Made by a program: the position numbers and the translations under genes. A DNA stretch of 64,000 bases from assembly GCA_964188305.1 (NCBI GenBank), contig OZ076893.1. One strand, 5' to 3'. Below the pieces are notes generated by a model. It had not been told where the DNA came from. It was given only the letters and a program-made list of their open reading frames with translations, and did no database searches. Of this stretch, positions 20,788 through 57,891 are shown piece after piece. Positions within the stretch are counted from its first letter, which is position 1. The number at the start of each line of letters is the position of its first letter. Source of the DNA: Podarcis bocagei (taxonomy: Eukaryota).

Positions 20788-21151
20788 CAGCCATATCTCA
20801 TCTACCTGGTGACTGCAGTGGCTTTTGTTTCCTGCTTGTTCATCACTTTCCTCGTGTTAGTGGTCATCAGGTTGCACAGATGGAGAAAACTGCAGCTGTT
20901 TGAGTCAAGGAGTGTGAATTTCAGTGGTGCTCCTGTCTCACAGTTTGTGGCTATTGATGGAATCCAAGCATTTATTTACTCTTATTGTGATGATCTTTCT
21001 CTTACCACTGACTTTATGAAAAAACCAGTTTAACACTTCCAGGGCAAATTATTTCCATACCGCAACCAATGATCAGGCCTAGGAGGTAAAGGATCCTATT
21101 TTTGCTACTGGGTATTTAGATTGGAACAATGGAAATGAAATCAGAGACCAG
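20788..21151 (+). pseudogene. Relic gamma-A variable exon: TM plus cytoplasmic tail only (type-II tail), frameshifted
   Basis: Encodes [53 protein letters not shown], homologous to the tail of exon 41845; frameshift near 21015-21030; retained donor-like CAG|GTGTGC; no ectodomain or CSE upstream. Confidence 0.85.
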
Positions 21152-22166
21152 GTGTGCTAACTTTTTCTTCTAATTGTAAATGTAGTTACAAATCTTGACA
21201 GATAAATTTTCCATTTTTCTCTTTTCTTGACCCTTTTCAAAGCAATTAGACATGTTGGTAATTATTTTATTCCACTTATAGCTAGTATCTTATTTTACTA
21301 GTTGGGGAAATCTATATATCCAGAATTTCCCAGACATATCCAAAATTTGTCAACATCATCTGGGCAGAAATCAGAAAAATGTTGGGAAAAATCCGGGCGT
21401 ATGGCAGCCCATGTTGGCAGTTGCGATCTTGCCCAACAACTTTTCTGTCCGGATTTTCACTGTTTGAAACATGGCAACTGAAGGTCTGATTGCCTGGGAC
21501 ACAAGCCAGAAGGCACAGTGGGTGGTCTTCTCACTTTGGTGAGTGGCAAGGAGGGGAAAAGAGGGGGAAAGAAGGTAGCAGGGGGGGAGTGGCCTATTTT
21601 TTTGTCTTGGCCCCTCCCCCCAACTGTGCCCACATTTGGCTTCAGCCCTGTCCACCACTGGCTTTTGTCTTGCCCAGCATCTGCATATGGCCCCTGGCAG
21701 ATTACCTTTGGCCCCCTGTTCTGTTCTGTTGTGGAATGCCTGCCCCTTGGGAAGTCTGATTGCCCCCCCTCATTAAATGACAGGCTGTGAATACCTCTGT
21801 GTTCAATTACACTGTCAATTATTTCTTCCACCTCCCTGTTGGTTGATTAATTGTTTTCATTGAAGTTGTGATCTGCTTTGGAAGTCCCTGGACTAAAAGC
21901 TGAGATGAACCTATTTCGAACAAATAAATACATTTTCCTGTGGTAACATGATCTTCTGGTTCTCTTTGCCAACCACTATTCTTAAATAGGTGCAACTTGT
22001 GCCTAGTTAAGTGCAAGTAATAATTGCTCACAGTAGCATAAAGTACCTCTAAGCCTGGAAGGAAAGGGGGTGTTGCTATATGCACTTTGAGTGCTGGTGG
22101 GAATTGCATGCTGAAATAGCTGACCTATCCTGCCTGCATTACAGTTCCCAATCCCAAACCAGGAGC

Positions 22167-22300
22167 CATGTGCTAGAACTGGCCCTCCAAATGTTTTGGG
22201 ACTACAATTCCCATCATCCCTGACCACTGGTCCTGCTAGCTAGGGATGATGGGAGTTGTAGTCCCCAAAACACCTGGAGGGCTGAGTTTGGGGATGCCTG
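22167..22300. mobile_element. Palindromic MITE (copy 1)
   Basis: Hairpin GGACTACAATTCCCATCATCCCT / AGGGATGATGGGAGTTGTAGTCC. Confidence 0.7.
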
Positions 22301-23459
22301 TGCCAGAAGGAGGCATCCATCCTCTAATCTACCTTGCTGGACTGGGTCATTAGTCAAATATAGATTCATTTTGCTATGTGTATGCATTGTGTTTTAGTCT
22401 ATGCTTTTGGCTAATCTTTCTTCACTGAACAATGGTGTTACTATTCACTGATAACTCCACGTTTTCAGGTAATAAGAATTTAACCTATCAAATTAATATC
22501 AACAATAAGACCGATAGAATGATAGAAAATCATTCCGAATCTATGATTGCATTCAAGTCAAGTGTGGATATAAGCACTTCTGGATATATCTTAGACCCCC
22601 AAAAGAAAGTTTCTTATCACTCAAATCCTCTCCGCTGAATGGCTCTGCACTGATACAATAATGGCAGAAAGAAAGTTCTCAGTTCAAAACAACTACTGTT
22701 ACTACTACTACTATTACTACTACGATTAATTATGACATTTCAGTTTACAGTCTGACAAACTGAAATTCTGGCAGAGTAGTGCACACTTTGAGTGCACTTG
22801 AGTAGAAGCTTTTTCTTCATGTCATAAACATTCCTGATTAATTACAGTAAACTTCCGCATGTGCCAAAGCAATCCAAAAATGCAATACATCTAACAAATC
22901 TTTTATCTTCAGATATAAGTTTCATTGAGTTTATACTCAGGTAAGTTGGTATAGGATTGCAATGTAAAAACTGTAATAAAATCTTACTAGCAAAGGTTGA
23001 ATAGAATTAAGTAACAATACTATGAAAACAGAAATGAAAAACCAATTATTCAAAAGGATCATATGGGTCTTCTTGGGAAATACCATTGAAAAGCATCCAA
23101 AAAAGTCAAAGGGAGAATATTGAATAATTCACCACCTAAGGAATTAGGAATCATCACACAGAATCGTAAGGAAAGATGTATCACCCAAAACTTCCTCTAG
23201 TGCAGCAGTGGCCAGCCAGATGCCACAGGGAAGATTACAAACATATGGGAAAAATGTCAAATGAATATGCATGCCTAAAGAATGAAAGAGTTATCCTGTG
23301 CTAAAGTGAATTTAAATTTCTTTTTCAGCATTTTATTATGGCCAAAAGAACAGAAATAAAGCACACAATGCACCAAAATCTTAAAGAAAGAACAAATTTA
23401 AAAAATTAAAACAAGTTCATAATTAAATAAAGGCCAAATCACCAGAATTCTGGCAGGGA

Positions 23460-23672
23460 TAGGGTTGCCAGGGCATCCCACAATTGTTTTTAGGAAAACC
23501 TGAAAGTTGTTGAGCTTTTTCTAGACAAAAACACCCCTAAAACCGTGATTTTGTGATTGACTTGCCTAAGAACGAGGACAAAGCGCCAACTCTTTGAAAT
23601 TCCCCCAAGATGTCAATTCCGCCTTTGAAATCCCAGTAACGTCCAGGGAAATCCGAACGTATGGCAGCCCTA
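23460..23672. mobile_element. hAT MITE (copy 1)
   Basis: TIR TAGGGTTGCCA / TGGCAGCCCTA; 8-bp TSD GGCAGGGA. Confidence 0.85.
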
Positions 23673-23975
23673 GGCAGGGATGTAGGCTTCCTGAATTATT
23701 GCATGGTTTTCTTCTGCTGGCAACTGCTTGTGTTTATGCTCCATCAAAAACACCCTAAAGTGTCATTATCATCTACCAGGAAAAGCAATAAAAATATTAA
23801 AATAACAGTTTGTATGCAATGAAAAAGAAATCTGAATTAAGCTTATGTGACTTCTAATCAAGTGATACTAAAGTACATTTGGACAACCAGTGAAAGAATT
23901 TTTACTCATTCACAATTCTCCATAGATATCAGGGGGAAATAGCAATATAGAATTATAAACATGAAAATAAGCAAA

Positions 23976-24016
23976 TACAGTTCCCCATGTGGACTCAGAG
24001 TGTCACTGTTGGACAA
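23976..24016 (+). promoter_or_regulatory. CSE / CTCF site of B1 (CACT variant)
   Basis: TACAGT...GGACTCAGAGTGTCACTGTTGGAC; CACT at 24004. Confidence 0.8.
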
Positions 24017-24242
24017 CGTGGGAGCAGCCATGGCTCCAGCATTTCGGAGACTCTTAGAGCAGTGTCTCTCAACACTTCAGCTGAGCAGAAAGGAAAAGCT
24101 TTTATTTTAAAAGCTGCTCAAGAAAGGAAAGCTCTCAGTTTCCCAAAGATCAGCTGAAAAGAAGAATATTTCTATTATCTCAAATAAGTGTACTGGGAGT
24201 CTTGAAAACTGTACTGAAAGAAGGAAGAAATCAGGAAATGCA

Positions 24243-26672
24243 ATGGATGTGATGGAAGTAAAGCAGGCAGAGAGAACAAGGAAGATCACCAAGAGGCAAG
24301 TACTGTTTCTGTTCATATTCTGGTCTGTGTTCTGCTGCCAGGTAGTGTCTGAGAAGGTTCAGTATTCAGTTCCAGAGGAAGCAGAGCAGGGCTCCTTTGT
24401 GGGGAACCTTGCTAAAGATCTGGGGTTGGATGTCAGAGAGCTGTCAAAGCGCAAACTTGGTATTTCTTCAGAAAAGCAGTTCTTTGAATTGAATGAACAA
24501 AATGGCAACCTGTATGTGAATGAGAGGATAGACCGGGAAGAGATTTGTGGGGAATCATCCACTTGTGTCGTCAAATTAGAAGTTGTGGCACACAATCCTT
24601 TGAATATTTTCCACATAAATATTTTTATCCAGGACATTAATGACAATGCCCCATATTTCCGGAATGAAAATGTTGAGCTTAAATTGAGTGAGTCTACTCT
24701 GCCAGGAACTCGATTTGCTCTTGGAAATGCTGAAGATAAAGACATTGGAACAAATTCCCTGCAGAATTATCAATTGAGCTCAACTCCATATTTCAAGTTG
24801 GAAATTCAAAACAGCAATAATGGTGGCAAATATGCAGAATTAGTATTGCAGAAACAACTGGACAGGGAAAAAGAACATGTGCATCACATGGTCCTTACAG
24901 CCATGGATGGTGGAGAACCTCCAAAAACCGGAACAGCCAAAATATTGGTAACAGTTCTTGATGCTAATGACAATGCCCCTGTTTTCACCCAGACAATCTA
25001 TAAAGTGAGCCTGAAGGAGAGTGCACCCAAAGAAACCTCTGTGCTTCAAGTCAAAGCATCTGACAGTGATGAAGGGTCCAATGCTGAGATCACTTATACA
25101 TTCAGTGACATCCCAGAAACAGCTGAGCAGAAATTTCATCTGGATCCCAGAGATGGAACAATTACACTTATAGAAAGTGTTGATTTTGAGGACAGACAAA
25201 AATATTTGATGATAATTAAGGCAAGTGATGGAGGAGGCTTGGCGGCACATTGCAATGTGGAGATTGAGGTTCTTGATGAGAATGACAATGCTCCAGATGT
25301 GATCCTTACATCCGTGTCCAGCCCAGTTCCAGAAGATGTCACATCTGGAGCTGTGATTGCTCTCATTAAAATTCAGGACAGGGATTCTGGGGATAACGGA
25401 GAAGTCACCTGTCACCTGAAGGAACTTGTACCTTTCCTGATAGTCTCATCCTCGGATAATTACTTCAAGCTCCTCATAGATGGTGCTCTTGACAGAGAAA
25501 GGACTCCAGAGTATAATATTACAATCACAGCCACAGACAAAGGCACACCTCCACTATCCACACACAAAACCATATCAATACAGATCTCAGATATCAATGA
25601 TAACCCACCAGCCTTTGACAAATCTTCCTACACTGCCTACATTCCAGAGAACAACCCATCTGGAGCTTCAATTTTCCACATCAAGGCCTCTGACCCAGAT
25701 CTGGATCGCAATGCCAGAATCACTTACTCCATCCTTCACAGCAACATCAAGGACCTGCCTCTCTCCTCCTATGTCTCCATTAACTCTGAGACCGGGATCA
25801 TCTATGCCCAACGCTCCTTTGACTATGAGCAATTCAGGGAGTTTCAGATTCAAGTGAAGGCCCAAGATGGAGGTTCTCCACCACTCAATAGCAGTGCCAC
25901 AGTGACAGTATGTGTTTTGGATCGAAATGATAACGCTCCGCAGATCCTGTACCCCTCACAATCAACAGAGGGCTCCCCTTTCTTTGAGATGGTGCCTCGG
26001 TCAGCTGAGTCGGGTTATCTGGTGACGAAGGTGGTGGCCGTGGACTCTGATTCTGGACACAATGCCTGGCTCTCCTTCCATCTCCTGCAGGCCACAGAGC
26101 CCTCACTCTTCAGCATTGGCTCCCACACAGGAGAGGTGCAAACAGTCCGAGCATTACTTGAGAGAGATGCAGTGAAGCAGAGGCTGGTCATCCTGGTGAA
26201 GGACAATGGGCATCCTCCTCTCTCAGCCACCACAACTTTGAGCCTGGTGTTTGCTGAGAACTTCCAGGAGGCTCTTCCAGAAATGAACTCCCAACCAAAT
26301 GACTCAGAGTATCAGTCTGATCTACAGTTTTATTTGGTATTGGCCTTGACCTTGGTGTCCTTTCTGTTCCTGGTGACGGTGATTCTGACCATTCTGATGA
26401 AGCTTCGAAGGTCAAGGAACCCCACTTTCCTTCAGTGCTTTATTCCTGACCCCCATTCAAAGGCTGGTGCCATATTCCCACCCAATTATGAGGACGGAAC
26501 TTTGCCTTATTCCTACCAGGTCTGTCTGTCCTCTGAATCCAGGAGGAATGAGTTGACATTCCTGCAGCCCACTGTCCAAATAGCAGAGAACATCCTTTGC
26601 AATGGCAGCTCTGACATTTCTTTGATGGTCAGTGGAGGCAATTTAATTTCTGAAAAGGAAAATGACAGCACG
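24243..26672 (+). CDS. PCDHGB: Protocadherin gamma-B-like variable exon (B1)
   Basis: 818-aa ORF; gamma-B tail [16 protein letters not shown] and [20 protein letters not shown]; donor ACG|GTGAGT after 26672 (810 codons). Confidence 0.92.
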
Positions 26673-29390
26673 GTGAGTTATATTGCATGTTCCTTATAGG
26701 GAATTTGGTGTTGTCACTTGTTTGATAGTTTAATTGTAAACAGTGGATGTTATCAAACTGGCATCCCAGAGAATTGAGACCATGTCATCAGGGAAATAGG
26801 TAGGAAGTAGTACTGAGCTGCTACTGCTGTAGAGCAAGCTAATTGGATTTTCCAGCAGCTATTGAGGAACAGCATAGCTGGATGGTGGAGGCTCTGTCAG
26901 AATTACCCAGGTGCACATTTGCATGGTAACTCGGTGCCGTGCTAAGATTACAGTGTGGTGCAGCATGGCTAAGTGGAGAGAATGCTATTTTTCTTTTCTT
27001 TTCTTATCTTTGCAGTACAAATGCAATTGAATAAGTAGTTATTTTTTACATTCTGTCCTTTAAGAAATTTACAAGAAGAAATACCAAAAAGTCTTTCATA
27101 GAATATTCTTTAAATAAGTTGGTAAATTTCTTAGTAATTGGTAAAGTTTTTCAACTGAATTTTAGGAAGTGTGTGTGGAAGGAAGTGTTTATGGGTTGGA
27201 TTATTTAATGAGAGTAAAGGATTAATTAATCACTAAACATTTTAGAATAACTTGATTTGGTTCTCATAAATACAGATAATCTTACATAGCATTTGGATAC
27301 TGTGTTCCTGTCATAGACAGAGCTTGGGATTTGGGTCTGATGAGAATAGCACAACATATTAAGTGGTGGAGCACTGATAGTATCAGTAGTACAAGCATTT
27401 CTTAGGTCCTGTGACTGCATGCTGTTTGTAGAATGAAAAATGCTCATGTACAACCTGTGTAGAAGAGTGGCAGCATCAAAAGGGAGTTTCTCTTGGCATG
27501 ATTTCTAGAGATGTTGTATACCACTCTTTGTGTGTGTGTGTGGGACTATAGAATTATTTTACTTAAATAAATAATATGCACATATCCCACCCCCCACGTC
27601 CAAGATATGTATATACTGGAAATGGTCCCTGGATTGACAAATACCCTAAACCAAACATGACTGTATCATGAACCCAAAAGTATCCCCTGCCCCTGCACTG
27701 GCCCCAGCCCTGGCCAGGTCCTGTATTCTCATATACTACTGATGTCCAGTGTGGATGCAATCCCAAAGTATTGGCATTCCTTTCCTTGGCATTTGCATTA
27801 GAGATTATGACAAATTGTAACAGTTGTAGTGAACACTTTGTATGTAAGGATGTGTGGATGTGGAGCATGTGGTTAGTATTTCCACTTATACCATCTCTAG
27901 TCATGCTTCCATACTGTAGAAATATAGGGGACAAATGACTATTGGGTCACAGCTACCAATAGTAGATGCCCTTTTAACTCTTTGGCATGGAATGTTTTCT
28001 TATGGAGAGTCAATCTGGCCAGGACATACATCTGCACATGCTGTAATTGCTGTACTTTAAAGCTGGGTCATGTTCACCACCAGTGTATATTCCATTAGGA
28101 AAGATGAAGACTAATGTTAAAATAACATTTTTGGCATTATCTAGTGGATAATTCAGTGTCTTGTCCCTCCTGCTAATGGCCAAATTCAGTTTTAGCAGTT
28201 TAATCTTGTAGAACAAGAAGCACAACATCAAGCTCTCCAACGAAGATGGCCGAAAACCACCTACCTCTGCTGTTTAACAAGCCCTCACATGCTAGTTTTT
28301 AATAAAGCTCTCTTCTGAGTTTGACATCCAGTTTTCACATGTGTGCTTCTAAGCTGCCATTGAATGTTATCCATCCACAGTAGTGGTGTTTGTGATAAGC
28401 TGGAGCTGTGGATGAGGCAGCGGTGTGGCTGGGTCTGTATGCATCTGTCAGCAACCAATCTGGCATTCCTGCTGGTGCACCTACATGGCCCTAAGCTTGC
28501 CGTGACTGAAGCCCAGCCCTTTCCAGATAAGCAGTGGCAATAAATTACAGAGAATGTGGCCATTTTACTTCTTTGCTCTGTGCAGTAATACCTAGTGTTA
28601 AGAATGTTCAAGGCGCTTCACATATAGTGCTGTGTAACTCTTACAATAACCCAGAAAAGCAGATCAATGTTATGATATTGGGGTAGGGGGAGAGGCTGCA
28701 TTCAAATTTGTGGGGAATATTGCATTAGTTATTTTTCCTGCGTTTAATGGCAGCATTTCTGTCCTGTTCTTTTCACTGTGGTACCTGCTGTGCTAAGGAA
28801 CTGTGGTTTTTGACTGATATACCAGCAAGTTGTGCTGAATTTCATGCACACCAGTGTATTTGGTATCACACAACAATGAATGTCATTGGCTAATGCCGCA
28901 ACTCTGTCAGCCTTTCTGCACATGGATGCCTCTGTTTCCCCATGAAAACAGCAGGAAAGAACTGTGTGTCAGCATATCAGTTTCCTCACTTTACAACTAC
29001 AAACATTACACTGACACAAAGAAAATAAGAAGTACCAGAGGCTTACTATTCTTTTTTCTGCATCCAAAATGAATCTTTTGAATATCCAGCAAAGAACATT
29101 GCTGAGAAAGTTCAATATTTCAGAATTCAATTCATTCCAGAATTTCCAGTAATGGGCTAGGGCAGGAACCCTAAACACACTTGTCTTTCCTGCTCCATTT
29201 CAGTTTGTTTACAACAACAAAAGTTGTCACTCTTCTTTATCTATAGTGGGTAAATTTGAAGGGAAAAAATAAAGAATATAGAAAAATATACATAGTTATC
29301 CTAGCTATATCTTCATTTATAATATTTATAATATTATAATATAATAGTACAGTGAAATGGTGTTTATTTAATTTTCAAAAGTGAAGTTTT

Positions 29391-29431
29391 TGCAGTTTGG
29401 GCTTGATCCTCTGGGTGTCACTGTTGACCAG
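29391..29431 (+). promoter_or_regulatory. CSE / CTCF site (CACT variant)
   Basis: TGCAGT...TCCTCTGGGTGTCACTGTTGACC; CACT at 29419. Confidence 0.83.
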
Positions 29432-29617
29432 AACGGAGCAGAAATGTGAAATCCTGCCCAGTCGAAGTTGCCTTTCCGTTAAACACAAACACAAAATATC
29501 TGAAGGAACAAGCTGCTTGTCAGTGCAAAGAAGAAATGGAAGTGCATTTTCCTTAGAAAAAAATTGGATACAGCATCATTTGAATCAGAATTGAAGGGCC
29601 TTTAACCTGCTGCAAGG

Positions 29618-32041
29618 ATGGAAGGAACTCAGAGGCTGTGGAATTGCAGAAAGGGAATCTTCCAGTGCCTTTTCATGATGTTTTCTTGGAAGGCAGTTTC
29701 TGGGCAGATCCACTACTCCATTCCAGAAGAGATGCACAAAGGCTCTTCCGTGGGGAATGTTGCAAAAGACCTGGGAATGGATGGCAAGCAGCTCCCAGAC
29801 CATGGACTCCGCATTGTTTCCCCTGTAGGTATGATTCAGTACTTCTCTTTGAATGCCAACAATGGCCATTTGCAGATATCTGAGAGAATAGATAGAGAGG
29901 AAATTTGTGGAGAAGCAGAGAAATGTTTGTTGAAGTTTCAGGTTCTTGTTGAAAGCAAATTGAAGCTTTATGGAATTGAAGTGGAAATTACAGATATAAA
30001 TGATAATGCTCCCCACTTCTCTCTATGGGAACAGGACCTGGAAATCAGTGAGGCATCTATACCTGGATTCCAGGTTCCTCTTCCTGAAGCTCAAGATGCA
30101 GATTGGGGGATAAATTCAGTGCAGAGCTATGAACTCACGGGCAGTAGCCATTTTGCTTTGCATGTGCAAACAGAAGAAAATGGTGTCAGACTTGTTGAAC
30201 TTGTGTTGGAAAAGTCACTGGACAGAGAGGAACAATCAGCTTACGATTTGCTCCTCACAGCTACTGATGGAGGTGATCCCATCAGATCTGGCACATTACA
30301 AATCCACATCGCCGTCCTTGATGCAAATGACAATGCACCAGTTTTCAGCCAACCTCTCTATGAAGTGAGTGTGAATGAGAATATTCCCAAGTGGTCCACA
30401 CTTTTGACAGTGAGAGCAACTGATATGGATGAAGGAATCAATGGAGACATTAAATACTTTTTCCAAAAAATCACAAAGAAGGACTCCCAAATGTTTCTGT
30501 TAAATTCCACAACAGGTGAAATCATCCTTATTGGGAATCTTGATTATGAGGAATCATCTTTATATGCATTTGAGATACAAGCAAAAGATGGAGGAGGCCT
30601 GAGTGACAGATCAAAAGTTGTGTTATCTGTGATGGATCTGAATGACAATGCACCCGAATTATCAGTTACCTTTGCCACCAACACCATACTGGAAAGTTCA
30701 CCATCCCAAACGGTAATTGCCATTTTAAATGTCCAAGACCGAGATTCAGGAATCAATGGGGAAATCACATGTTCAATCCCTAGCAACCTCCCTTTCCAGC
30801 TAAAGAATTCCATGGATAACTTTTACAGTTTGGTGACAGATGGTGCTCTTGACAGGGAACAGGTGTCAGTCTTCAATATTACTGTCACTGTCACTGACCA
30901 TGGAGTCCCCCCTCTTTCTACAGTCACAGTTGTCACACTTCATGTTTTAGACACAAATGACAACCCACCCCTCTTTGAAAAAACAGACTATACTTTCTAT
31001 TTTGTTGAGAATAACCAAAGAGGAGCCATGGTCTCTTCTATAAGAGCAAATGATCTTGACTGGGAAGAAAATGCCAGAATAACATATTCCATCACTGATG
31101 ACCAAAGAAGTGACTCCCGCCTCTCCTCCTACCTCTCCATTAACTCTGAGACAGGGGTTATATATGCTCTGACCTCCTTTGATTATGAAGACTTTCGAGA
31201 CATTCGGTTCCATGTAAAGGCTCAGGATGGAGGTTCTCCACCACTCAGCTCCAACGTCTCAGTGACTCTCTTCATCCTGGACCAGAATGACAATGCTCCC
31301 CAAATCCTGTACCCCTCCCCTCCCACTGATGGCTCCACGGGGATAGAGCTGGCCCCTCGCTCCTCTGAGCCAGGCTACCTGGTCACTAAGGTGGTGGCCG
31401 TGGATGCGGACTCTGGCCAGAATGCCTGGCTCTCCTACCAGCTGATCAAGGCCACCGAGCCAGGGCTCTTCACTCTGGGGCTCCACACGGGAGAGATCAG
31501 GACGGCCCGCTTCTTTCTGGAGAAAGATGCCCTCAAGCAAAGCCTGGTGGTTTTAGTCAAGGACAATGGGCAGCCTCCAATGTCGGCATCAGTCACTGTC
31601 ACTGTGGTCTTGGCTGACAGCATCCCTGACATGCTGACTGATCTGAGCAGCGTCCCAGTATCTGAAGACCCACAGTCAGATCTCACCTTCTACTTGGTGT
31701 CTGCAGTGGCTTTTGTCTCCTGCTTGTTCCTCGCCTTCCTCCTTGTGTTACTGGCACTCAAACTTCGCAGGTGGAAAAATTCTCAGCTGCCTGATAATGC
31801 AAGTTTGAATTTCAGTGGTGCACCAGTTTCACAGTTTGTGGGGATTGACGGAGTCCGGGCATTTCTTCAGTCTTATTGTCATGAGGTTTCACTGACTTCA
31901 GGCTCTCGGAAAAGTCAGATTCTTTTTCCAATCGGAAGCTGTACCAATACTCTGACACCACAACAGGCTCCTGATAAGCCAGGCCCTGTGTTACTCATAG
32001 GTGATTCTAACACAGGTATGGAGGAGGCAGCAACCCATCAG
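29618..32041 (+). CDS. PCDHGA: Protocadherin gamma-A-like variable exon 4 (chimeric: ectodomain like exon 41845, tail and intron like exon 17921)
   Basis: 811-aa ORF; donor CAG|GTGAGC after 32041 (808 codons). Confidence 0.93.
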
Positions 32042-33032
32042 GTGAGCACATAAGTTTCAGTACTTCCTATTTGATCTCCCAGTATTCTAAAATGCATAGG
32101 AAACTTTCCTGAGTACAAAAGGTTTCCTGGCTCAGGCAATCACCATCCAGGACTGGGAGACTAAGAAGAACCACAGCATGGTGTAGATTGCACATCTCTT
32201 CCCGAGGCCCCTCCTTTGCATGTTTAGCTAAAGCTAAGGATGCATTCCTGAAGGCTGCTAGTGCCATTGTTTAATAATGATTAACAAGGTCTCTAGAACA
32301 GTTTGGTTTGCCAGAACTTTTGGTAGCAGGGCTCTCTCTCCATGGCTGTAGCACAGAGGTGGATAACCAGTGGGCTGCATGCACCATCCACATCTGCATA
32401 TTCATCTGGGCTTGGAGGCTCTTTTTTATTTTTTGTGGATTTTTTTCCTTCAATGTTTTTACTAAAATCTTTTGCAGTTGAGACACAGATCCAGAAAGGG
32501 TGCATGGGAGAAGGAAAGATGTGGGGTGAGGGAGGGAACAGGGAGAAAGGATAGATGGACACAGCTTCATTACATTTTGTGTTAACCAAAAACAAAAACA
32601 AAAAAACCACAAAGGGAGTTTATTTTAAATGTCAGGGGTTTTTTAAAATATATATAATACAAAAAAGCGAGAACTCTAACCCCAAACTGTTTGGGTTGCA
32701 TGCAACAAGAAAGGTTTTCAGCGGGTGGGGCATCAATGCTTGGTGTGGGGGGCTGACACGCTTGGAACACGAATCATGAGAGAAGCTCAGGGAATGGAGC
32801 ATTAAAACAGACACCATGAAAGAATGAGGTGCTTGGGCAAGGAGGGAAATACAGAGCAGTTCCTCAGCAGGGGAATGGAGGGCACTCCACACTGAAGCCA
32901 TGGAGAAATCCAATCCTTTTCCATCCCATCCCACTGCAGCCCATCCCATCTTTCAGTGCAGTCCCCCAAACTGCCTATACCTTCCTGATCCTGCCAAAGA
33001 GAAACACCACTACCGGAGACGGGGTGGGGAAT

Positions 33033-33384
33033 CATCTACCTGGTGACTGCAGTGGCTTTTGTTTCCTGCTTGTTCATCACTTTCCTCGTGTTAGTGGTCA
33101 TCAGGTTGCACAGATGGAGAAAACTGCAGCTGTTTGAGTCAAGGAGTGTGAATTTCAGTGGTGCTCCTGTCTCACAGTTTGTGGCTATTGATGGAATCCA
33201 AGCATTTATTTACTCTTATTGTGATTATCTTTCTCTTACCACTGACTTTTGAAAAAACCAGTTTAACACTTCCAGGGCAAATTATTTCCATACCGCAACC
33301 AATGATCAGGCCTAGGAGGTAAAGGATCCTATTTTTGCTACTGGGTATTTAGATTGGAACAATGGAAATGAAATCAGAGACCAG
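33033..33384 (+). pseudogene. Second copy of the relic gamma-A TM/tail exon
   Basis: Near-identical to 20788-21151 at an offset of about 12.23 kb; premature TGA at 33250-33252. Confidence 0.85.
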
Positions 33385-34398
33385 GTGTGCTAACTTTTTC
33401 TTCTAATTGTAAATGTAGTTACAAATCTTGACAGATAAATTTTCCATTTTTCTCTTTTCTTGACCCTTTTCAAAGCAATTAGACATGTTGGTAATTATTT
33501 TATTCCACTTATAGCTAGTATCTTATTTTACTAGTTGGGGAAATCTATATATCCAGAATTTCCCAGACATATCCAAAATTTGTCAGCATCATCTGGGCAG
33601 AAATCAGAAAAATGTTGGGAAAAATCCGGGCGTATGGCAGCCCATGTTGGCAGTTGCGATCTTGCCCAACAACTTTTCTGTCCGGATTTTCACTGTTTGA
33701 AACATGGCAACTGAAGGTCTGATTGCCTGGGACACAAGCCAGAAGGCACAGTGGGTGGTCTTCTCACTTTGGTGAGTGGCAAGGAGGGGAAAAGAGGGGG
33801 AAAGAAGGTAGCAGGGGGGGGAGTGGCCTATTTTTTTGTCTTGGCCCCTCCCCCCAACTGTGCCCACATTTGGCTTCAGCCCTGTCCACCACTGGCTTTT
33901 GTCTTGCCCAGCATTTCCTAAGGCCACTGGCAGATTACCTCTGGCCCCCTGTTCTGTTCTGTTGTGGAATGCCTCCCCCTTGGGAAGTCTGATTGCCCCC
34001 CTCATTAAATGACAGGCTGTGAATACCTCTGTGTTCAATTACACTGTCAATTATTTCTTCCACCTCCCTGTTGGTTGATTAATTGTTTTCATTCAAGTTG
34101 TGATCTGCTTTGGAAGTCCCTGGACTAAAAGCTGAGATGAACCTATTTCGAACAAATAAATACATTTTCCTGTGGTAACATGATCTTCTGGTTCTCTTTG
34201 CCAACCACTATTCTTAAATAGGTGCAACTTGTGCCTAGTTATGTGCAAGTAATAATTGCTCACAGTAGCATAAAGTACCTCTAAGCCTGGAAGGAAAGGG
34301 GGTGTTGCTATATGCACTTTGAGTGCTGGTGGGAATTGCATGCTGAAATAGCTGACCTATCCTGCCTGCATTACAGTTCCCAATCCCAAACCAGGAGC

Positions 34399-34532
34399 CA
34401 TGTGCTAGAACTGGCCCTCCAAATGTTTTGGGACTACAATTCCCATCATCCCTGACCACTGGTCCTGCTAGCTAGGGATGATGGGAGTTGTAGTCCCCAA
34501 AACACCTGGAGGGCTGAGTTTGGGGATGCCTG
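34399..34532. mobile_element. Palindromic MITE (duplicated copy)
   Basis: Same sequence as 22167-22300, offset 12232. Confidence 0.7.
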
Positions 34533-35685
34533 TGCCAGAAGGAGGCATCCATCCTCTAATCTACCTTGCTGGACTGGGTCATTAGTCAAATATAGATTCA
34601 TTTTGCTATGTGTATGCATTGTGTTTTAGTCTATGCTTTTGGCTAATCGTTCTTCACTGAACAATGGTGTTACTATTCACTGATAACTCCACGTTTTCAG
34701 GTAATAAGAATTTAACCTATCAAATTAATATCAACAATAAGACCGATAGAATGATAGAAAATCATTCCGAATCTATGATTGCATTCAAGTCAAGAGTGGA
34801 TATAAGCAGTTCTGGATATATCTTAGACCCCCAAAAGAAAGTTTCTTATCACTCAAATCCTCTCCACTGAATGGCTCTGCACTGATACAATAATGGCAGA
34901 AAGAAAGTTCTCAGTTCAAAACAACTACTGTTACTACTACTACTACTACTACGATTAATTATTACATTTCAGTTTACAGTCTGACAAACTGAAATTCTGC
35001 CAGAGTAGTGCACACTTTGAGTGCACTTGTGTAGAAGCTTTTTCTTCATGTCATAAACATTCCTGATTAATTACAATAAACTTCCACATGTGCCAAAGCA
35101 ATCCAAAAATGCAATACATCTAACAAATCTTTTATCTTCAGATATAAGTTTCATTCAGGTAAGTTGGTATAGGTATGCAATGTAAAAGCTGTAATAAAAT
35201 CTTACTAGCAAAGGTTGAATAGAATTAAGTAACAACACTATGAAAACAGAAATGAAAAACCAATTATTCAAAAGGATCATATGCGTCTTCTTGGGAAATA
35301 CCATTGAAAAGCATCCAAAAAAGTCAAAGGGAGAATATTGACTAATTCACCACCTAAGGAATTAGGAATCATCACACAGAATCGTAAGGAAAGATGTATC
35401 ACCCAAAACTTCCTCTAGTGCAGCAGTGACCAGCCAAATGCCACAGGGAAGATTACAAACATATGAGAAAAATGTCAAATGAATATGCATGCCTAAAGAA
35501 TGAAAGAGTTATCCTGTGCTAAAGTGAATTTAAATTTCTTTTTCAGCATTTTATTATGGCCAATAGAACAGAAATAAAGCACACAATGCACCAAAATCTT
35601 AAAGACAGAACAAAATACAAAATTTAAATTTGCTAAACAAGTTCATAATTAAATAAAGGCCAAATCACCAGAATTCTGGCAGGGA

Positions 35686-35899
35686 TAGGGTTGCCAGGGC
35701 ATTCCACAATTGTTTTTAGGAAAACCTGAAACTTGTTGAGCTTTTTCTAGACAAAAACACCCCTAAAACCATGATTTTGCAATTGACTTGAATAAGAACG
35801 AGGATAAAAGGGCCAACTTTTGGAAATTCCCCCAAGATGTCAATTCCGCCTTTGAAATCCCAGTAACGTCCAGGGAAATCCGAACGTATGGCAGCCCTA
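35686..35899. mobile_element. hAT MITE (duplicated copy)
   Basis: Same TIRs and GGCAGGGA TSD as 23460-23672. Confidence 0.85.
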
Positions 35900-36202
35900 G
35901 GCAGGGATGTAGGCTTTCTGAATTATTGCATGGTTTTCTTCTGCTGGCAACTGCTTGTGTTTATGCTACATCAAAAATACCCTAAAGTGTCATTATCATC
36001 TACCAGCAAAAGCAATAAAAATATTAAAATAACAGTTTGTATGCAATGAAAAACAAATCTGAATTAAGCTTATGTGACTTCTAATCAAGCGATTCTAAAG
36101 TACATTTGGACAACCAGTGAAAGAATTTTTAGTCCTTCACAATTCTCCATAGATATCAGGGGAAAATAGCAATATAGAATTATAAACATGAAAATAAGCA
36201 AA

Positions 36203-36243
36203 TACAGTTCCCCATGTGGACTCTGAGTGTCACTGTTGGACAA
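36203..36243 (+). promoter_or_regulatory. CSE / CTCF site of B2 (CACT variant)
   Basis: GGACTCTGAGTGTCACTGTTGGAC; CACT at 36231. Confidence 0.8.
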
Positions 36244-36476
36244 CATGGGAGCAGCCATTGCTCCAGCATTTCTGAGACTCTTGGAGCAGTCTCTCTCTCT
36301 CTCTTAACACTTCAGCCGAGCAGAAAGGAAAAGCTTTTATTTTAAAAGCTGCTCAAGAAAGGAAAGCTCTCAGTTTCCAAAGATCAGCTGAAAAGAAGAA
36401 TATTTCTATTATCTCAAATAAGTGCACTGGGAGTCTTGAAAACTGTACTGAAAGAAGGAAGAAATCAGGAAAGGCA

Positions 36477-38905
36477 ATGGATGTTATGGAAATAAAGCAG
36501 GCAGAGAGAACAAGGAAGATCACCAAGAGGCAAGTACTGTTTCTGTTCATATTCTGGTCTGTGTTCTGCTGCCAGGTAGTGTCTGAGAAGGTTCAGTATT
36601 CAGTTCCAGAAGAAACAGAGCAGGGCTCCTTTGTGGGGAACCTTGCTAAAGATCTGGGGTTGGATGTCAGAGAGCTGTCAAAGCGCAAGCTTGGTATTTC
36701 TTCAGAAAAGCAGTTCTTTGATTTGAATGAACAAAATGGCAACCTGTATGTGAATGAGAGGATAGATCGGGAAGAGATTTGTGGGGAATCATCCACTTGT
36801 GTCCTCAAATTAGAAGTTGTGGCACACAATCCTTTGAATATCTTCCACGTAAATATTTTTATCCAGGACATTAATGACAATGCCCCATATTTCCGGAATG
36901 AAAATGTTGAGCTTAAATTGAGTGAGTCTACTCTGCCAGGAACTCGATTTGCTCTTGGAAATGCTGAAGATAAAGACATTGGAACAAATTCCCTGCAGAA
37001 TTATCGATTGAGCTCAACTCCATATTTCAAGTTGGAAATTCAAAACAGCAATGATGGTGGTAAATATGCAGAATTAGTATTGCAGAAACAACTGGACAGG
37101 GAAAAGGAACAGATGCACCACATGGTCCTTACAGCCATGGATGGTGGAGAACCTCCAAAAACCGGAACAGCCAACATATTGGTTGCAGTTATTGATATTA
37201 ATGACAATGCCCCTGTTTTCACCCAGACAATCTATAAAGTGAGCCTGAAGGAGAGTGCACCCAAAGGAACCTCTGTGCTTCAAGTCAAAGCATCTGACAG
37301 TGATGAAGGGTCCAATGCTGAGATCACTTATACATTCAGTGACATCCCAGAAACAGCTGAGCAGAAATTTCATCTGGATCCCAGAGATGGAACAATTACA
37401 CTTATAGAAAGTGTTGATTTTGAGGAGAGACAAAAATATGTGATGATAATTAAGGCAAGTGATGGAGGAGGCTTGGCGGCACATTGCAATGTGGAGATTG
37501 AGGTTCTTGATGAGAATGACAATGCTCCAGATGTGATCCTTACATCCGTGTCCAGCCCAGTTCCTGAAGATGTCACTTCTGGAGCTGTGATTGCTCTCAT
37601 TAAAGTTCAGGACAGGGATTCTGGGGATAACGGAGAAGTCACCTGTCACCTGAAGGAACTTGTACCTTTCCTGATAGTCTCATCCTCGGATAATTACTTC
37701 AAGCTCCTCATAGATGGTGCTCTTGACAGAGAAAGGACTCCCGAGTATAATATTACAATCACAGCCACAGACAAAGGCACACCTCCACTCTCCACACACA
37801 AAACCATATCAGTACAGATCTCAGATATCAATGATAACCCACCAGCCTTTGAAAAATCTTCCTACACTGCCTACGTTCCAGAGAACAACCCATCTGGAGC
37901 TTCTATTTTCCACATCAAGGCCTCTGACCCAGATCTGGATCGCAATGCCAGAATCACTTACTCCGTCCTTCACAGCAACATCAAGGACCTGCCTCTCTCC
38001 TCCTATGTCTCCATTAACTCTGAGACTGGGATCATCTATGCCCAACGCTCCTTTGACTATGAGCAATTCAGGGAGTTTCAGATTCAAGTGAAGGCCCAAG
38101 ATGGAGGTTCTCCACCACTCAATAGCAGTGCCACAGTGACAGTATGTGTTTTGGATCGAAATGATAATGCTCCGCAGATCCTGTACCCCTCACAATCAAC
38201 CGAGGGCTCACCTTTCTTTGAGATGGTGCCTCGGTCAGCTGAGTCGGGTTATCTGGTGACGAAGGTGGTGGCCGTGGACTCTGATTCGGGACACAATGCC
38301 TGGCTCTCCTTCCATCTCCTGCAGGCCACAGAGCCCTCACTCTTCAGCATTGGCTCCCACACAGGAGAGGTGCAAACAGTCCGAGCATTACTTGAGAGAG
38401 ATGCAGTGAAGCAGAGGCTGGTCATCCTGGTGAAGGACAATGGGCATCCTCCTCTCTCAGCCACCACAACTTTGAGCCTGGTGTTTGCTGAGAACTTCCA
38501 GGAGGCTCTTCCAGAAATGAACTCCCAACCAAATGACTCAGAGTATCAGTCTGATCTACAGTTTTATTTGGTATTGGCCTTGACCTTGGTGTCCTTTCTG
38601 TTCCTGGTGACGGTGATTCTGACCATTCTGATGAAGCTTCGAAGGTCAAGGAACCCCACTTTCCTTCAGTGCTTTATTCCTGACCCCACTCAAAGGCTGG
38701 TGCCATATTCCCACCCAATTATGAGGACGGAACTTTGCCTTATTCCTACCAGGTCTGTCTGTCCTCTGAATCCAGGAGGAATGAGCTGACTTTCCTGCAG
38801 CCCACTGTCCAAATAGCAGAGAACATCCTTTGCAATGGCAGCTCTGACATTTCTTTGATGGTCAGTGGAGGCAATTTAATTTCTGAAAAGGAAAATGACA
38901 GCATG
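36477..38905 (+). pseudogene. PCDHGB: Protocadherin gamma-B-like variable exon (B2) with 1-bp frameshift after the TM (pseudogene, truncated isoform or assembly error)
   Basis: Near-identical to B1; C5 run is C4 at 38684-38687, giving a stop at 38789; the normal tail continues in another frame (ORF 38735-38932) to donor ATG|GTGAGT after 38905. Confidence 0.75.
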
Positions 38906-41617
38906 GTGAGTTATATTGCATGTTCCTTATAGGGAATTTGGTGTTGTTTGAGAGTTTAATTGTAAACAGTGGATGTTATCAAACTGGCATCCCAGAGAAT
39001 TCAGACCATGTCATCAGGGAAGTAGGTAGGGAGTAGTATTGAGCTGCTACTGCTGTAGAGCAAGCTAATTGGACCTTCCAGCAGCTATTGAGGGGCAGCA
39101 CAGCAGGATGGCGGAGGCTCTGTCAGAATTGTCCAGGTACACATCTGCATGGTAACTCGGTGTCGTGCTAAGATTACAGTGTGGTGCAGCATGGCTGAGT
39201 GGAGAGAATGTTTTCTTCTTCTTCTTATCTTTGCAGTACAAATGCAATTGAATATGTAGCTGTTTTCACATTCTGTGCTTTAAGAAATTTACAAGAAGAA
39301 ATACCAAAAAGTCTTTCATAGAATATTCTTTAAATAAATTGGTAAATTGGTAAAGTTTTTCAACTGAATTTTGGGAAGTGTTTGTGGAGCTTTTTATGGG
39401 TTGGATTATTTAATGAGAGTAAAGGATTAATTAATCACTAAACGTTTTAGAATACTGTAACTTGATTTGGTTCTCATATATACAAATAATCTTACATAGC
39501 ATTTGGATATTGTGTTCCTGTCACAGACACAGCTTGGGATTTGGCTCTGATGAGAATAGCACAACATATTAAGTGGTGGAGCTCTGATGGAGGCTATCAG
39601 TTGTACAAGCATTTCTTAGGTCCTGTGACTGCATGCTGTTTGTAGAATGAAAAATGCTCATGTACAACCTGTGTAGAAGAGTGGCAGCATCAAAAGGGAG
39701 TTTCTCTTGGCATGATTTCTAGAGATGTTGTATACCACTCTTTGTGTGTGTGTGGGGGACTATAGAATTATTTTACTTAAATAAATAATATGCACATATC
39801 CCACCCCCCACGTCCAAGATATGTATATACTGGAAATGGTCCCTGGATTGACAAATACCCTAAACCAAACATGACTGTATCATGAACCCAAACGTATCCC
39901 CTGCCCCTGCACCGGCCCCAGCCCGGGCCAGGTCCTGTATTCTCATATACTACTGATGTCCAGTGTGGATGCAATCCCAAAGTATTGGCATTCCTTTCAT
40001 TGCTTTTGCATTATATTGTTAGAGATTATGATAAATTGTAACAGTTATAGTGAACACTTTGTATGTAAGGATGTGTGTATGTGGAGCGTGTGGTTAGTAT
40101 TTCTACTTATACCATCTCTAGTCATGCTTCCATACTGTAGAAATATAGGTGACAAATAACTAGTGAGTGACAGCTACCAATGGTAGATGCCCTTTTAACT
40201 CTTTGGCATGGAATGTTTTCTTATGGAGAGTCAATCTGGCCAGGACATACATCTGCACATCCTGTAATTGCTGTACTTTAAAGCTGGGTCATGTTCACCA
40301 CCAGTGTATATTCCATTAGGAAAGATGAAGACTAATGTTAAAAGAACATTTGTTGGCAATATCTAGTGGATAATTCAGTGTCTTGTCCCTCCTGCTAATG
40401 GCCAAAATCAGTTTTAGCAGTTTAATCTTGTAGAATAAGAAGCACAACATCAAGCTCTCCAAAGAAGATGGCCGAAAACCACCCACCTCTGCTGTTCAAC
40501 AAGCCCTCACATGCTAGTTTTTAATAAAGCTCTCTTCTGAGTTTGACATCCAGTTTTCACATGTGTGCTTCTAAGCTGCCATTGAATGTTATCCATCCAC
40601 AGTAGTGGTGTTTGTGATAAGCTGGAGCTGTGGATGAGGCAGCGGTGTGGCTGGGTCTGTATGCATCTGTCAGCAACCAATCTGGCATTCCTGCTGGTGC
40701 ACCTACATGGCCCTAAGCTTGCCGTGACTGAAGCCCAGCCCTTTCCAGATAAGCAGTGGCAATAAATTACAGAGAATGTAGCCATTTTACTTCTTTGCTC
40801 TGTGCAGTAATACCTAGTGTTAAGAATGTTCAAGGCGCTTCACATATAGTGCTGTGTAACTCTTACAATAACCCAGAAAAGTAGATCAATGTTATGATAT
40901 TGGGGTAGGGGGAGAGGCTGCATTCAAATTTGTGGGTAATATTGCATTAGTTATTTTTCCTGCGTTTAATGGCAGCATTTCTGTCCTGTTCTTTTCACTG
41001 TGGTACCTGCTGTGCTAAGGAACTGTGGTTTTTGACTGATATACCAGCAAGTTGTGCTGAATTTCATGCACACCAGTGTATTTGGTATCACACAACAATG
41101 AATGTCATTGGCTAATGCCACAACTCTGTCAGCCTTTCTGCACATGGATGCCTCTGTTTCCCCATGAAAACAGCAGGAAAGAAATGTGTGTCAGCATATC
41201 AGTTTCCTCACTTTACAACTACAAACATTACACTGACACAAAGAAAATAAGAAGTACCAGAGGCTTACTATTCTTTTTTCTGCATCCAAATGAATCTTTT
41301 TAATATCCAGCAAACAACATTGCTGAGAAAGTTCAATATTTCAGAATTCAATTCATTCCAGAATTTCCAGTAATGGGGTAGGGCAGGAACCCTAAACACA
41401 CTTGTCTTTCCTGCTCCTTTTCAGTTTGTTTACAACAAAAAAAAATGTCACTCTTTTTTATCCTTAGTGGTTAAATTCGAAGAAGAAAAAATAAAGAATA
41501 TGGAAAAATATACATAGTTATCCTAGCTATATCTTCATTTATAATATTTATAATATTATAAAAAACTAGTACTGTACAGTGAAATGGTGTTTATTTAATT
41601 TTCAAAAGTGAAGTTTT

Positions 41618-41658
41618 TGCAGTTTGGGCTTGATCCTCTGGGTGTCACTGTTCACCAG
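41618..41658 (+). promoter_or_regulatory. CSE / CTCF site (CACT variant)
   Basis: TGCAGT...TCCTCTGGGTGTCACTGTTCACC; CACT at 41646. Confidence 0.83.
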
Positions 41659-57847: not shown

Positions 57848-57891
57848 TTTTCTTTCTTTCTTTCTTTCTTTCTTTTTTTCTTTCTTTCTTT
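57848..57891. repeat. (TTTC)n microsatellite
   Basis: Direct tetranucleotide repeat. Confidence 0.8.

Follow-up and report, generated by a model that had tools for sequence, protein, structure and literature searches.

Clustered protocadherins (Pcdhs) provide neuronal surface identity. A gamma A-type variable exon is one large exon that encodes a signal peptide, six cadherin repeats, a transmembrane (TM) helix, and a short variable cytoplasmic domain. The birth of new Pcdh isoforms is usually inferred only from trees blurred by conversion. Hybrid genes at NAHR junctions are known from the Lepore/anti-Lepore globins and the red/green opsin hybrids.

The 3' part of Pcdh variable exons undergoes regional gene conversion and concerted evolution, as described in Fugu (PMC1852091), Anolis gamma-a (PMC2764143), and Xenopus (PMC4978886), and all three studies cite Noonan et al. 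2004. In Anolis, gamma-a is the subgroup with low dS in ECD5 and ECD6 (0.065 in ECD6) (PMC2764143). Pcdh clusters are generally known to undergo tandem duplication through unequal crossover. Such a duplication has been modelled in mouse Pcdh-alpha, where the extra exons are subject to the same stochastic choice as the rest (PMC4151104). We found no report in the literature of a hybrid Pcdh exon at a crossover junction, a negative result of little weight.

The window analysed here, a 64,000-nucleotide stretch of Podarcis bocagei DNA (contig OZ076893.1), holds part of the gamma-Pcdh cluster of a lacertid lizard. Like the Pcdh loci of Fugu, Anolis, and Xenopus, it combines divergent EC1-EC4 heads with a near-identical late ectodomain and tail within a subgroup, and the homogenised subgroup is gamma-A, as in Anolis. 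In the assembly sequence, one of its exons, C29, sits on the junction of a 12.2-kb head-to-tail duplication. Here we describe the mosaic structure of C29 and weigh the events that may have produced it.

Results

Variable exons of the window

The plus strand carries 10 tandem ORFs of ~810 aa each, and in every one of them Pfam identifies Cadherin_2, five Cadherin domains, and Cadherin_C_2. The C29 ORF (811 aa) shows this same series and has the architecture of a gamma A-type variable exon. The solved structures closest to C29 are mouse gamma-B4, gamma-A9, and gamma-A4, and its named relatives are lacertid 'protocadherin gamma-A6-like' proteins. A17, with a splice donor (CAG/GT) at 20347/20348, is 95.5% (head) and 98.6% (tail) identical to its P. 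raffonei orthologue P0009. E41 is the positional orthologue of P. raffonei exon X (P0243), with a tail identity of 93.9%, and the exon and 3.8 kb of its 3' DNA are collinear with the loci of P. raffonei (L004) and P. lilfordi (L005). The gamma-B copy B36 has lost 1 bp from a C run near 38683; the resulting frameshift leads to a stop at 38787-38789, and the donor GT is still intact at 38906. A second duplication in the window, B55/B60, has an intergenic junction.

Table 1 Coordinates of the features discussed in the text, in window positions.
Feature	Position	Strand	Description
A17	17921-20347	+	gamma-A-type variable exon with type-1 TM/cytoplasmic tail (ORF, Pfam); 3' parent of the chimera
Duplication unit 1	19630-31324	+	A17 EC6/tail, 3' DNA with relic, B24, intergenic DNA, C29 promoter and head
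Low-divergence tract	19870-22800	+	partner 31576-35030; 0.9-1.7% mismatch vs about 3.4% elsewhere
Relic	20788-21200	+	decayed TM and cytoplasmic fragment of a type-2-like exon; duplicate at 33035-33430
B24	24243-26672	+	gamma-B-type variable exon of unit 1, intact (ORF, Pfam)
C29 promoter element core (CSE-like)	29415-29425	+	203 bp before ATG; reads GTGTCACTGTT
C29 (exon 29618)	29618-32041	+	chimeric gamma-A-type variable exon; ORF intact, 811 aa, stop just 3' of donor
C29 head	29618-31216	+	signal peptide, EC1 to most of EC5; E41-derived
Homogenised late-EC5/EC6 segment	31217-31575	+	359 bp, common to all six gamma-A exons of the window; putative crossover substrate
Crossover point, best estimate	31310-31338	+	conservative interval 31217-31609
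Duplication unit 2	31325-43551	+	C29 EC6/tail, 3' DNA with relic copy, B36, intergenic DNA, E41 promoter and head
C29 tail	31576-32041	+	end of EC6, TM, variable cytoplasmic domain; type 1, A17-derived
Intron directly 3' of C29	32042-32396	+	98-100% identical to post-A17 intron 20348-20702
556-bp insertion	32397-32952	+	unit 2 only
B36	36477-38905	+	B24 copy in unit 2
E41 (exon 41845)	41845-44268	+	gamma-A-type exon with type-2b tail; 5' parent of the chimera

Mosaic ancestry of C29

C29 is a mosaic of two parents. At the informative positions, where A17 and E41 differ, the C29 head matches E41 at 367 of 399 sites, A17 at 23, and neither at 9. Of the 142 such sites in the tail (31576-32047), 136 match A17 and 4 match E41. 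For the head, nucleotide identity is 96.3% with E41 and about 75% with A17, and the tail amino acid sequence is 98% identical to that of the A17 orthologue and 65% to that of X. In a three-way alignment, C29 and E41 are 93-100% identical from 28.6 kb to about 31.5 kb, and C29 and A17 are 97-100% identical from about 31.3 kb to 32396, with the similarity resuming from 32953. The A17 ancestry runs from 31576 past the splice donor into the intron. These counts bear out the sequence-only reading of this DNA, in which exon 29618 was said to follow exon 41845 from the promoter onward and then to carry a 17921-type tail and intron.

Separate head and tail trees, which that reading had proposed as a check, conflict with each other. 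C29 groups with E41 in the head tree (support 100/100) and with A01, A09, and A17 in the tail tree, where E41 and A49 stand apart (100/100). In AU tests, the congruent alternatives fail with p = 1e-82 and 1e-3. As in a hybrid gene, the 5' part of C29 comes from the downstream parent and the 3' part from the upstream parent.

Duplication units and the homogenised EC6 segment

Self-BLAST aligned 20697-31955 with 32947-44182 (11.3 kb, 95.8% identity with gaps included) and 17888-20702 with 29586-32396. The head-to-tail period is about 12.2 kb, with an ungapped identity between the units of about 97.7%; the unit ends in Table 1 were placed by the refined crossover point. Self-BLAST and the three-way alignment show two copies each of the relic fragment and the B exon, as observed earlier, and likewise of the intergenic DNA. 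The relic is ancestral, since P. raffonei and P. lilfordi also carry it 3' of their A17 orthologues. The units differ by 14 indels of at least 3 bp, namely the 556-bp insertion and 13 smaller ones. The 556-bp insert has no second copy in the window, and neither unit 1 nor either of the two Podarcis loci contains it. The outgroups rule out a deletion in unit 1 and show that unit 2 gained the 556 bp after the duplication.

Both ends of the repeat unit fall inside the same 359-bp segment of C29. Pairwise identity in this segment is 93-100% among the six gamma-A exons of the window and at least 96% (96-99%) among A17, C29, and E41. As in the Pcdh genes of Fugu, Anolis, and Xenopus, dS is low (0.06-0.17 vs 0.7-1.5 in the heads) and GC is raised (0.59 vs 0.42). 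The breakpoint zone previously placed at 31217-31573 corresponds to the region in which the three exons are that similar. A maximum chi-square of 406 locates the switch between 31315 and 31339. We also used markers fixed in both Podarcis outgroups, for which A17 matches its orthologue and E41 matches X. E-type markers end at 31309 and A-type markers begin at 31339, which narrows the switch to 31310-31338. Since this zone undergoes ongoing conversion, the position is only a best estimate.

If two haplotypes of a single unit had been set in series by the assembler and joined in the EC6 segment, C29 would not exist, and homology alone would automatically make such a join in-frame. Twin copies separated by about 11 kb, noted elsewhere in the cluster, would be in keeping with this reading. 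The signs of a haplotypic false duplication, near-identical copies beside a gap, were not seen. There is no assembly gap at the junctions (19.6, 31.3, and 43.6 kb), the sole N run of the window being 12441-12673, and 359 bp at 96-99% identity are too short for a long-read overlap. The copies differ by about 3.4% in addition to their indels, approximately the depth between Podarcis species groups, and both exons carry the substitution pattern of constrained genes. We therefore regard an assembly artefact as hardly credible.

Single-unit state of two related species

Relatives without the duplication, which the sequence-only reading had suggested looking for, were found in P. raffonei and P. lilfordi. 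In both loci, collinearity with the window starts upstream of A17 and extends 4 kb beyond E41, and each holds a single unit consisting of the A17 orthologue, a B exon, and the E41 orthologue. In these outgroups, X, with its type-2b tail, occupies the place of the present C29 and E41. The single unit in both species indicates that the duplication and the chimera are derived. Of the C29/E41 head family, the P0003 cluster contains 11 members, which come from L. agilis, Zootoca, and three Podarcis species. All 11 have a type-2 tail, as does P. raffonei X, and the head-tail combination of C29 is accordingly a derived one. The protein head tree, which is a polytomy here, had suggested C29 as the orthologue of P. 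raffonei exon W; the flanking DNA rules this assignment out and shows that C29 and E41 are co-orthologues of X. DNA comparisons with P. raffonei used single-exon models in place of the spliced models P0003 and P0009.

The relationship of the units to the two Podarcis species is nearly star-like in the older part. Outside the B exon, 25 sites unite the units, and the conflicting groupings have 25 and 15 sites, so the event cannot be cleanly placed after the species split. These four-taxon patterns would fit a duplication and chimera older than the separation from P. raffonei and P. lilfordi, with one unit lost in those lineages by reciprocal unequal crossover or lineage sorting, as would the private branches of the units (1.1-1.2%), which equal the P. 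lilfordi branch. However, such an origin requires two independent precise losses or deep polymorphism, and the single unit of the outgroups favours neither unit 1 nor unit 2 in blocks. In the downstream tract, 40 sites unite the units and the conflicting groupings have only 1 and 0, a pattern that later conversion could also yield. An origin before the split is thus quite improbable in our view.

Uneven divergence between the units

The mismatch between the units is 0.9% in 20353-22800 and about 3.4% in 22801-31216, and not the even divergence expected from one event. In 20353-22800, each copy has 0.37% private change, and the two copies share differences from P. raffonei at 4.3% of sites. Private change against the outgroups is 1.1-1.8% per unit, which speaks for two genuine copies. 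CpG decay is ruled out as the cause, since non-CpG sites give the same contrast. The uneven divergence requires either a later conversion or a tail swap that postdated the duplication.

In the latter case, an older duplication with its junction outside the exon would have contained a complete E41-type exon, and a later conversion or double crossover, with a tract from the EC6 segment to ~35030, would have replaced its type-2b tail and intron by the A17 tail and 2.5 kb of 3' DNA. On this view, gene conversion, and not the duplication, would have made the chimera. This order of events would account for a tail and downstream tract about four times less diverged than the remaining unit, for the lower private change per copy in the tract (0.37% vs 1.5-1.8% outside), and for the start of the L. 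agilis homology to the unit near 22757. On the other hand, it requires a tract of at least 3.2 kb across a large non-homologous block and a first junction that left no trace, while a single EC6 crossover already accounts for the period and for both unit ends. Low-divergence patches elsewhere in the unit also show that plain conversion between the units is common here. We consider these two steps unlikely. The one-step origin by crossover in EC6, which we prefer, needs an extra and rather long conversion tract because the divergence is not uniform. A later conversion of ~3.2 kb that re-homogenised the tails of A17 and C29 and the DNA 3' of them would explain the low-divergence tract. The duplication itself is old, not recent, roughly as deep as the split of these Podarcis lineages.

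Constraint, promoter, and splicing of C29

C29 and E41 have both stayed intact, and purifying selection acts on each. Neither exon contains an indel, and their heads show a dN/dS of 0.23 (0.18-0.26 by branch), which rules out positive selection on the heads. Twelve nonsynonymous and 13 synonymous codon changes fall on the C29 branch, and 9 and 14 on the E41 branch. Of the 12 derived changes of C29, 8 are located in EC1-2. With 27 of 533 residues of EC1-5 differing between C29 and E41, the earlier description of "nearly the same recognition ectodomain" is too strong. The accompanying claim of two different intracellular tails holds for the membrane-proximal, TM, and variable cytoplasmic parts, but the constant tail is shared.

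A conserved promoter element precedes all ten exons. In C29 its core lies 203 bp before the ATG, in line with the ~200 bp expected for variable exons. In comparisons covering positions from 29347 onward, the C29 core has CACT instead of the usual CGCT box, and the same CACT core occurs in E41, in head-family exons of P. raffonei, P. lilfordi, and L. agilis, and in the four B exons of the window. The C29 donor, CAG/GTGAGC at 32041/32042, is identical to that of A17. Near the donor, C29 has private variants such as a T-to-M and an I-to-T change. In annotated P. raffonei mRNAs, the junction reads ...Q/QAQPNTDW... in the phase of the C29 donor for each of the tail types 1, 2a, and 2b. The gamma constant exons lie beyond the window, and C29 is predicted to be expressed and spliced to them. 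In 20 sequencing runs (7 organism labels), the word shares for the C29 query were 0.56-0.77, values that do not separate C29 from A17 and E41 because A17-type and other gamma-A exons share about 71% of the query.

Discussion

Unequal crossover in the shared EC6 segment is, in our judgement, probably the best explanation of the duplication and of C29, and we infer that both arose in one step. The trees, the AU tests, and the single-unit outgroups support this origin of the duplication and the new in-frame combination, as had been proposed in the sequence-only reading. The ancestral order would have been A17 with its type-1 tail, one gamma-B exon, and E41, of another head family and with a type-2b tail. 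The ~360-bp late EC5/EC6 segment of the gamma-A exons would have been kept alike by gene conversion, and on misaligned chromatids the E41 copy of this segment may have paired with the A17 copy. Unequal crossover there would yield a 12.2-kb tandem duplication with the new in-frame exon C29 at its junction. C29 would have received its promoter, signal peptide, and EC1-EC5 from E41, and the end of EC6, TM helix, variable cytoplasmic domain, splice donor, and intron from A17. The conversion of the A17 and C29 tails, the insertion 3' of C29, and the frameshift in B36 would have followed, while the C29 and E41 heads diverged under purifying selection. The notion of EC6 as a recombination hub restates the known 3' homogenisation of Pcdh variable exons, and the B55/B60 junction is not in an exon.

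The birth event can be read directly here: both parents and the product are present, the crossover window spans 30 bp, and two relatives retain the ancestral state. The converted EC6 block may be more than a by-product of concerted evolution, as it can be the birthplace of new exons and can shift EC1-5 recognition domains onto another transmembrane and variable cytoplasmic segment. The C29/E41 pair and A17 offer natural material for testing the contribution of the variable tail with a nearly constant ectodomain. The C29/E41 head family occurs with a type-1 tail in C29, with type-2b tails in E41, P. raffonei X, and Zootoca P0123, and with type-2a tails in P. raffonei W and P0003 and L. agilis H1 and H2. 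The DNA downstream of the L. agilis head-family exons is that which follows a different head (A49) in the window. Tentatively, and with somewhat more doubt than confidence, head-tail re-pairing may be a recurrent and retained mode in this cluster and not a one-off. If so, the converted EC6 block would act as a module linker by which ectodomains are movable between tail classes, and selection would have maintained C29/E41 as a natural swap experiment from roughly the time when these lizard lineages split.

The Fugu, Anolis, and Xenopus studies describe homogenisation of the block, whereas here it appears to be the substrate of a reciprocal unequal crossover that made a new exon. Unlike in those studies, an ectodomain was moved between tail classes, and two tail classes coexist in one gamma-A array. 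The head-to-tail duplication of variable exons and promoters within the cluster resembles the mouse Pcdh-alpha model; however, the mouse duplication was engineered through loxP sites located between exons and gave no hybrid exon, while the junction here is intra-exonic and the outgroup state is known. As with the globin and opsin hybrids, misaligned tandem paralogues would have given a junction gene with the 5' part of the distal parent and the 3' part of the proximal parent. In contrast to those hybrids, the parents here share only about 75% identity beyond a short converted block, so that this block dictates the crossover site, and the swap follows the borders of functional modules, namely the recognition domains and the TM/juxtamembrane tail. 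C29 is a clear and fresh example of the known growth of Pcdh clusters, one that illustrates the known mechanisms and does not overturn them.

Mosaic structure of exon C29

The ORF scan of the window revealed ten tandem ORFs of ~810 aa each, all on the + strand, and Pfam assigned Cadherin_2, five Cadherin domains and Cadherin_C_2 to 10/10. The nearest named relatives are lacertid "protocadherin gamma-A6-like" and "gamma-B-like" proteins, and mouse gamma-A and gamma-B ectodomains are the nearest among solved structures. Every ATG is preceded, ~200-250 bp upstream, by a conserved promoter element, and a splice donor of the (C/A)AG|GTGAG or ACG|GTGAG type ends every exon except A49, whose donor was not pinpointed. 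Since the CACT form of the promoter box is kept in Podarcis and Lacerta exons of the C29/E41 head family, it is an old variant, not recent CpG decay. B36 meets a frameshift stop ahead of its donor; a 1-bp deletion in a C run (C4, versus C5 in B24, B55 and B60) throws the cytoplasmic part out of frame. This frameshift is the derived state when polarised by P. raffonei and P. lilfordi, and B36 is either a young pseudogene or an assembly homopolymer error.

Coordinates of exons and other features (window positions unless stated)
Feature	Coordinates	Strand	Promoter box (CACT-form core)
A01, gamma-A-type	start 1892	+	CGCT
A09, gamma-A-type	start 9560	+	CGCT
A17, gamma-A-type	start 17921	+	CGCT
C29, gamma-A-type	start 29618	+	CACT (29415-29425)
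E41, gamma-A-type	start 41845	+	CACT (41642-41652)
A49, gamma-A-type	start 49974	+	CGCT
B24, gamma-B-type	start 24243	+	CACT (24000-24010)
B36, gamma-B-type	36477-38905; deletion 38683; stop 38787-38789	+	CACT (36227-36237)
B55, gamma-B-type	start 55094	+	CACT (54893-54903)
B60, gamma-B-type	start 60656	+	CACT (60412-60422)
Duplication units 1 and 2	19630-31324; 31325-43551
Relic, two copies	20788-21200; 33035-33430
Insertion in unit 2	32397-32952
High-divergence patch	26760-27359
267-bp element	16441-16707; reversed copy, L004 14581-14847
E41 substitution patch	43803-43827
E41 promoter and 5' end	41383-41986
B55/B60 duplication	53443-58329; 58626-64000
H1 and H2	10001-12421; 25058-27478 in merged L003 + L002 (L. 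agilis CM020422.1 4861367-4898844)

Self-BLAST paired 20697-31955 with 32947-44182, and 17888-20702 with 29586-32396. In the three-way alignment of A17, C29 and E41, C29 matches E41 at 93-100% identity, starting at least 1 kb upstream and running to ~31.5 kb, and matches A17 at 97-100% from ~31.3 kb via the donor into the intron; the A17-like match resumes past a 556-bp insertion and then covers the whole next unit. At sites where A17 and E41 differ, C29 agrees with E41 at 367/399 in the head (signal peptide and EC1 to most of EC5) and with A17 at 136/142 in the tail (end of EC6, TM and variable cytoplasmic domain). The maximum chi-square for a switch is 406, between 31315 and 31339. The sequence-only reading had described this mosaic correctly on every point checked by these comparisons. 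The separate head and tail trees that it proposed conflict at support 100/100 each, with (C29,E41) and A49 as sister in the head tree, and (A09,(C29,(A01,A17))) versus (E41,A49) in the tail tree; AU tests rejected congruent placements of C29 (p 1e-82 and 1e-3). That C29 is a false join of the assembly is very improbable: such a join would need to rest on 359 bp at 96-99% identity, and the divergence between the two units is on a level with that between different Podarcis lineages. A scan of the window found no N runs near the duplication junctions.

Probable point of exchange in early EC6

Among the six gamma-A exons, a shared block (31223-31582) shows 93-100% identity in all pairwise comparisons made, versus 55-90% in the heads, with dN ~0, dS 0.06-0.17 (heads 0.7-1.5) and GC 0.59 (heads 0.42). 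It is followed by a type 1 tail in A01, A09, A17 and C29 (96-100% alike) and by a type 2 tail in E41 and A49, and the two types share only ~62-65% protein identity. In annotated P. raffonei mRNAs, every tail class splices in one phase to the common gamma constant region. The two different intracellular tails proposed earlier thus differ in the end of EC6, the TM helix and the variable cytoplasmic domain, but not as whole tails.

Breakpoint markers were restricted to sites fixed in both species (A17 equal to its orthologue; E41 equal to X, its P. raffonei orthologue). At these markers, C29 is E-type to 31309 and A-type from 31339, with one isolated exception per side, which places the exchange, as a best estimate, where EC6 starts. 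Conversion continues in the shared block, so a conservative range is 31217-31609. The interval first suggested, 31217-31573, contains the switch, but its right limit rested on nine differences at 31576-31600 that are private to E41. These nine substitutions, all within 25 bp, set E41 apart from X, A17 and C29, and E41 is equal to A49 there. Since X equals A17 while E41 equals A49, the patch is probably a later micro-conversion, with a type-2a tail as donor once the species had split.

A single unit in related species

In flanking DNA, the window shares 95-96.6% identity with Podarcis lilfordi, 94.4-95.6% with P. raffonei and 88-92% with Lacerta agilis, which marks its lineage as a lacertid one at about the distance separating Podarcis species groups. 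The relatives' DNA was reached through single-exon gene models. Collinearity of the P. raffonei (L004) and P. lilfordi (L005) loci with the window starts ~3-4 kb before A17 and reaches 4 kb past E41, but each locus holds one unit versus two in the window. Their order is A17 orthologue, relic fragment, one B exon and X (P0243, 942 aa), which combines a head of E41 type with a type-2b tail (93.9% to E41) and is followed by the downstream DNA of E41. Related genomes lacking the duplication, named earlier as a check, thus exist, and their arrangement is, as judged from sequence, the ancestor predicted by unequal crossover. Type-2 tails occur in X and, within the P0003 cluster, in 11/11 members of the C29/E41 head family; these come from L. 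agilis, Zootoca and three Podarcis species (P. raffonei, P. lilfordi and P. muralis). The head-tail pairing of C29 is therefore derived.

The decayed relic, broken by one stop and one frameshift, codes for nothing beyond a TM helix and a type-2-like cytoplasmic domain and lies ~440 bp past the A17 donor. Since P. raffonei and P. lilfordi also carry it, it is an old remnant, and may be A17's displaced former tail or an adjacent exon that lost its head.

Age and probable later conversion

Against P. raffonei, non-coding DNA shows 1.5-1.8% private change per unit. When both outgroups are included, the older part, 22801-31216, comes out near-star, with private changes of 1.21% in unit 1, 1.11% in unit 2, 1.15% in P. 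lilfordi and 1.80% in P. raffonei; with the B exon set aside, 25 sites unite the units and conflicting groupings get 25 and 15. This dates the duplication to about the time when these lineages split; it is neither recent nor polymorphic.

Private change is only 0.37% per copy in 20353-22800, where 4.3% of sites are shared against P. raffonei, and 0.76-0.88% in 19560-20352 (1.6% shared). The A17 and C29 tails with their downstream segment (19560-22800) were evidently homogenised much later than the duplication. In the simplest reading, a ~3.2-kb conversion tract would have begun in the tails, already under ongoing conversion among type-1 exons, and extended into the sole homologous downstream DNA. 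It is rather unlikely that the tail swap of C29 itself dates from this later homogenisation instead of the duplication.

The 556-bp segment is an insertion specific to unit 2, as polarised by P. raffonei and P. lilfordi. An imperfect 12-13-nt direct repeat flanks it; no second copy was found within the window, and terminal inverted repeats were not evident. A local patch 3' of B24 has 28 unit-1-private changes versus 10 in unit 2. The 267-bp element sits in a 428-bp insertion of the window relative to P. raffonei, and its 98.5% copy in L004 is inserted at a site matching window 40547-40552; a short, young mobile element has probably moved in both lineages.

Maintenance of C29 and E41

C29 and E41 contain no indel and no stop, versus 14 indels of at least 3 bp in non-coding DNA of the units. 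Their head dN/dS is 0.23, and changed codons (nonsynonymous/synonymous) are 12/13 for C29 and 9/14 for E41, against a neutral expectation of ~3.6:1. Both exons are therefore kept by selection. The heads are close, as the claim of nearly the same recognition ectodomain implied, but 27/533 residues differ, and 8/12 derived replacements of C29 fall within EC1-EC2. Since the trans-recognition interface of protocadherins involves EC1-EC4, C29 and E41 may have lost their common specificity.

The ancestral promoter is better kept in C29 (97.6% identity to X) than in E41 (94.2%), so that the older-looking promoter is that of the chimeric exon. With P. raffonei as outgroup, the E41 promoter and 5' end carry 27 private changes versus 4 in the C29 counterpart, and L. 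agilis H2 also has several of these E41 variants, a hint that another paralogue of the head family was the conversion donor.

Comparison with known protocadherin clusters

The C29/E41 head family occurs with three tail classes. In L. agilis, H1 and H2 join an E41-type promoter and head to an A49-type tail, beyond which the DNA stays A49-type for at least 1.5 kb, and switch inside the same converted zone as C29. Relative to the window, H1 lacks the stretch that holds the tail and intron of E41 and the A49 head, a loss that fits an unequal-crossover deletion in that zone. In the window, the older gamma-B tandem duplication B55/B60 (~90% identity) has its junction in intergenic DNA near 58.3-58.6 kb by self-BLAST, not inside an exon. 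The proposal of EC6 as a recombination hub thus holds in part, as the three tail classes and the L. agilis switches fit it but the B55/B60 junction does not, and exon-internal crossover is one route of cluster growth, not the sole one.

The low dN and dS and high GC of the shared block match the signature of regional gene conversion described in fugu (PMC1852091) and in Anolis, the gamma-a subgroup in particular (PMC2764143). Pcdh clusters are already known to undergo both tandem duplication by unequal crossover and 3' homogenisation (PMC4151104, PMC1852091, PMC2764143, PMC4978886); no paper on a crossover-junction hybrid of Pcdh exons was found in the literature searched. C29 reflects processes already known for these clusters, its hybrid junction exon being a well-documented added case whose mechanism is like the classical one for hybrid genes.
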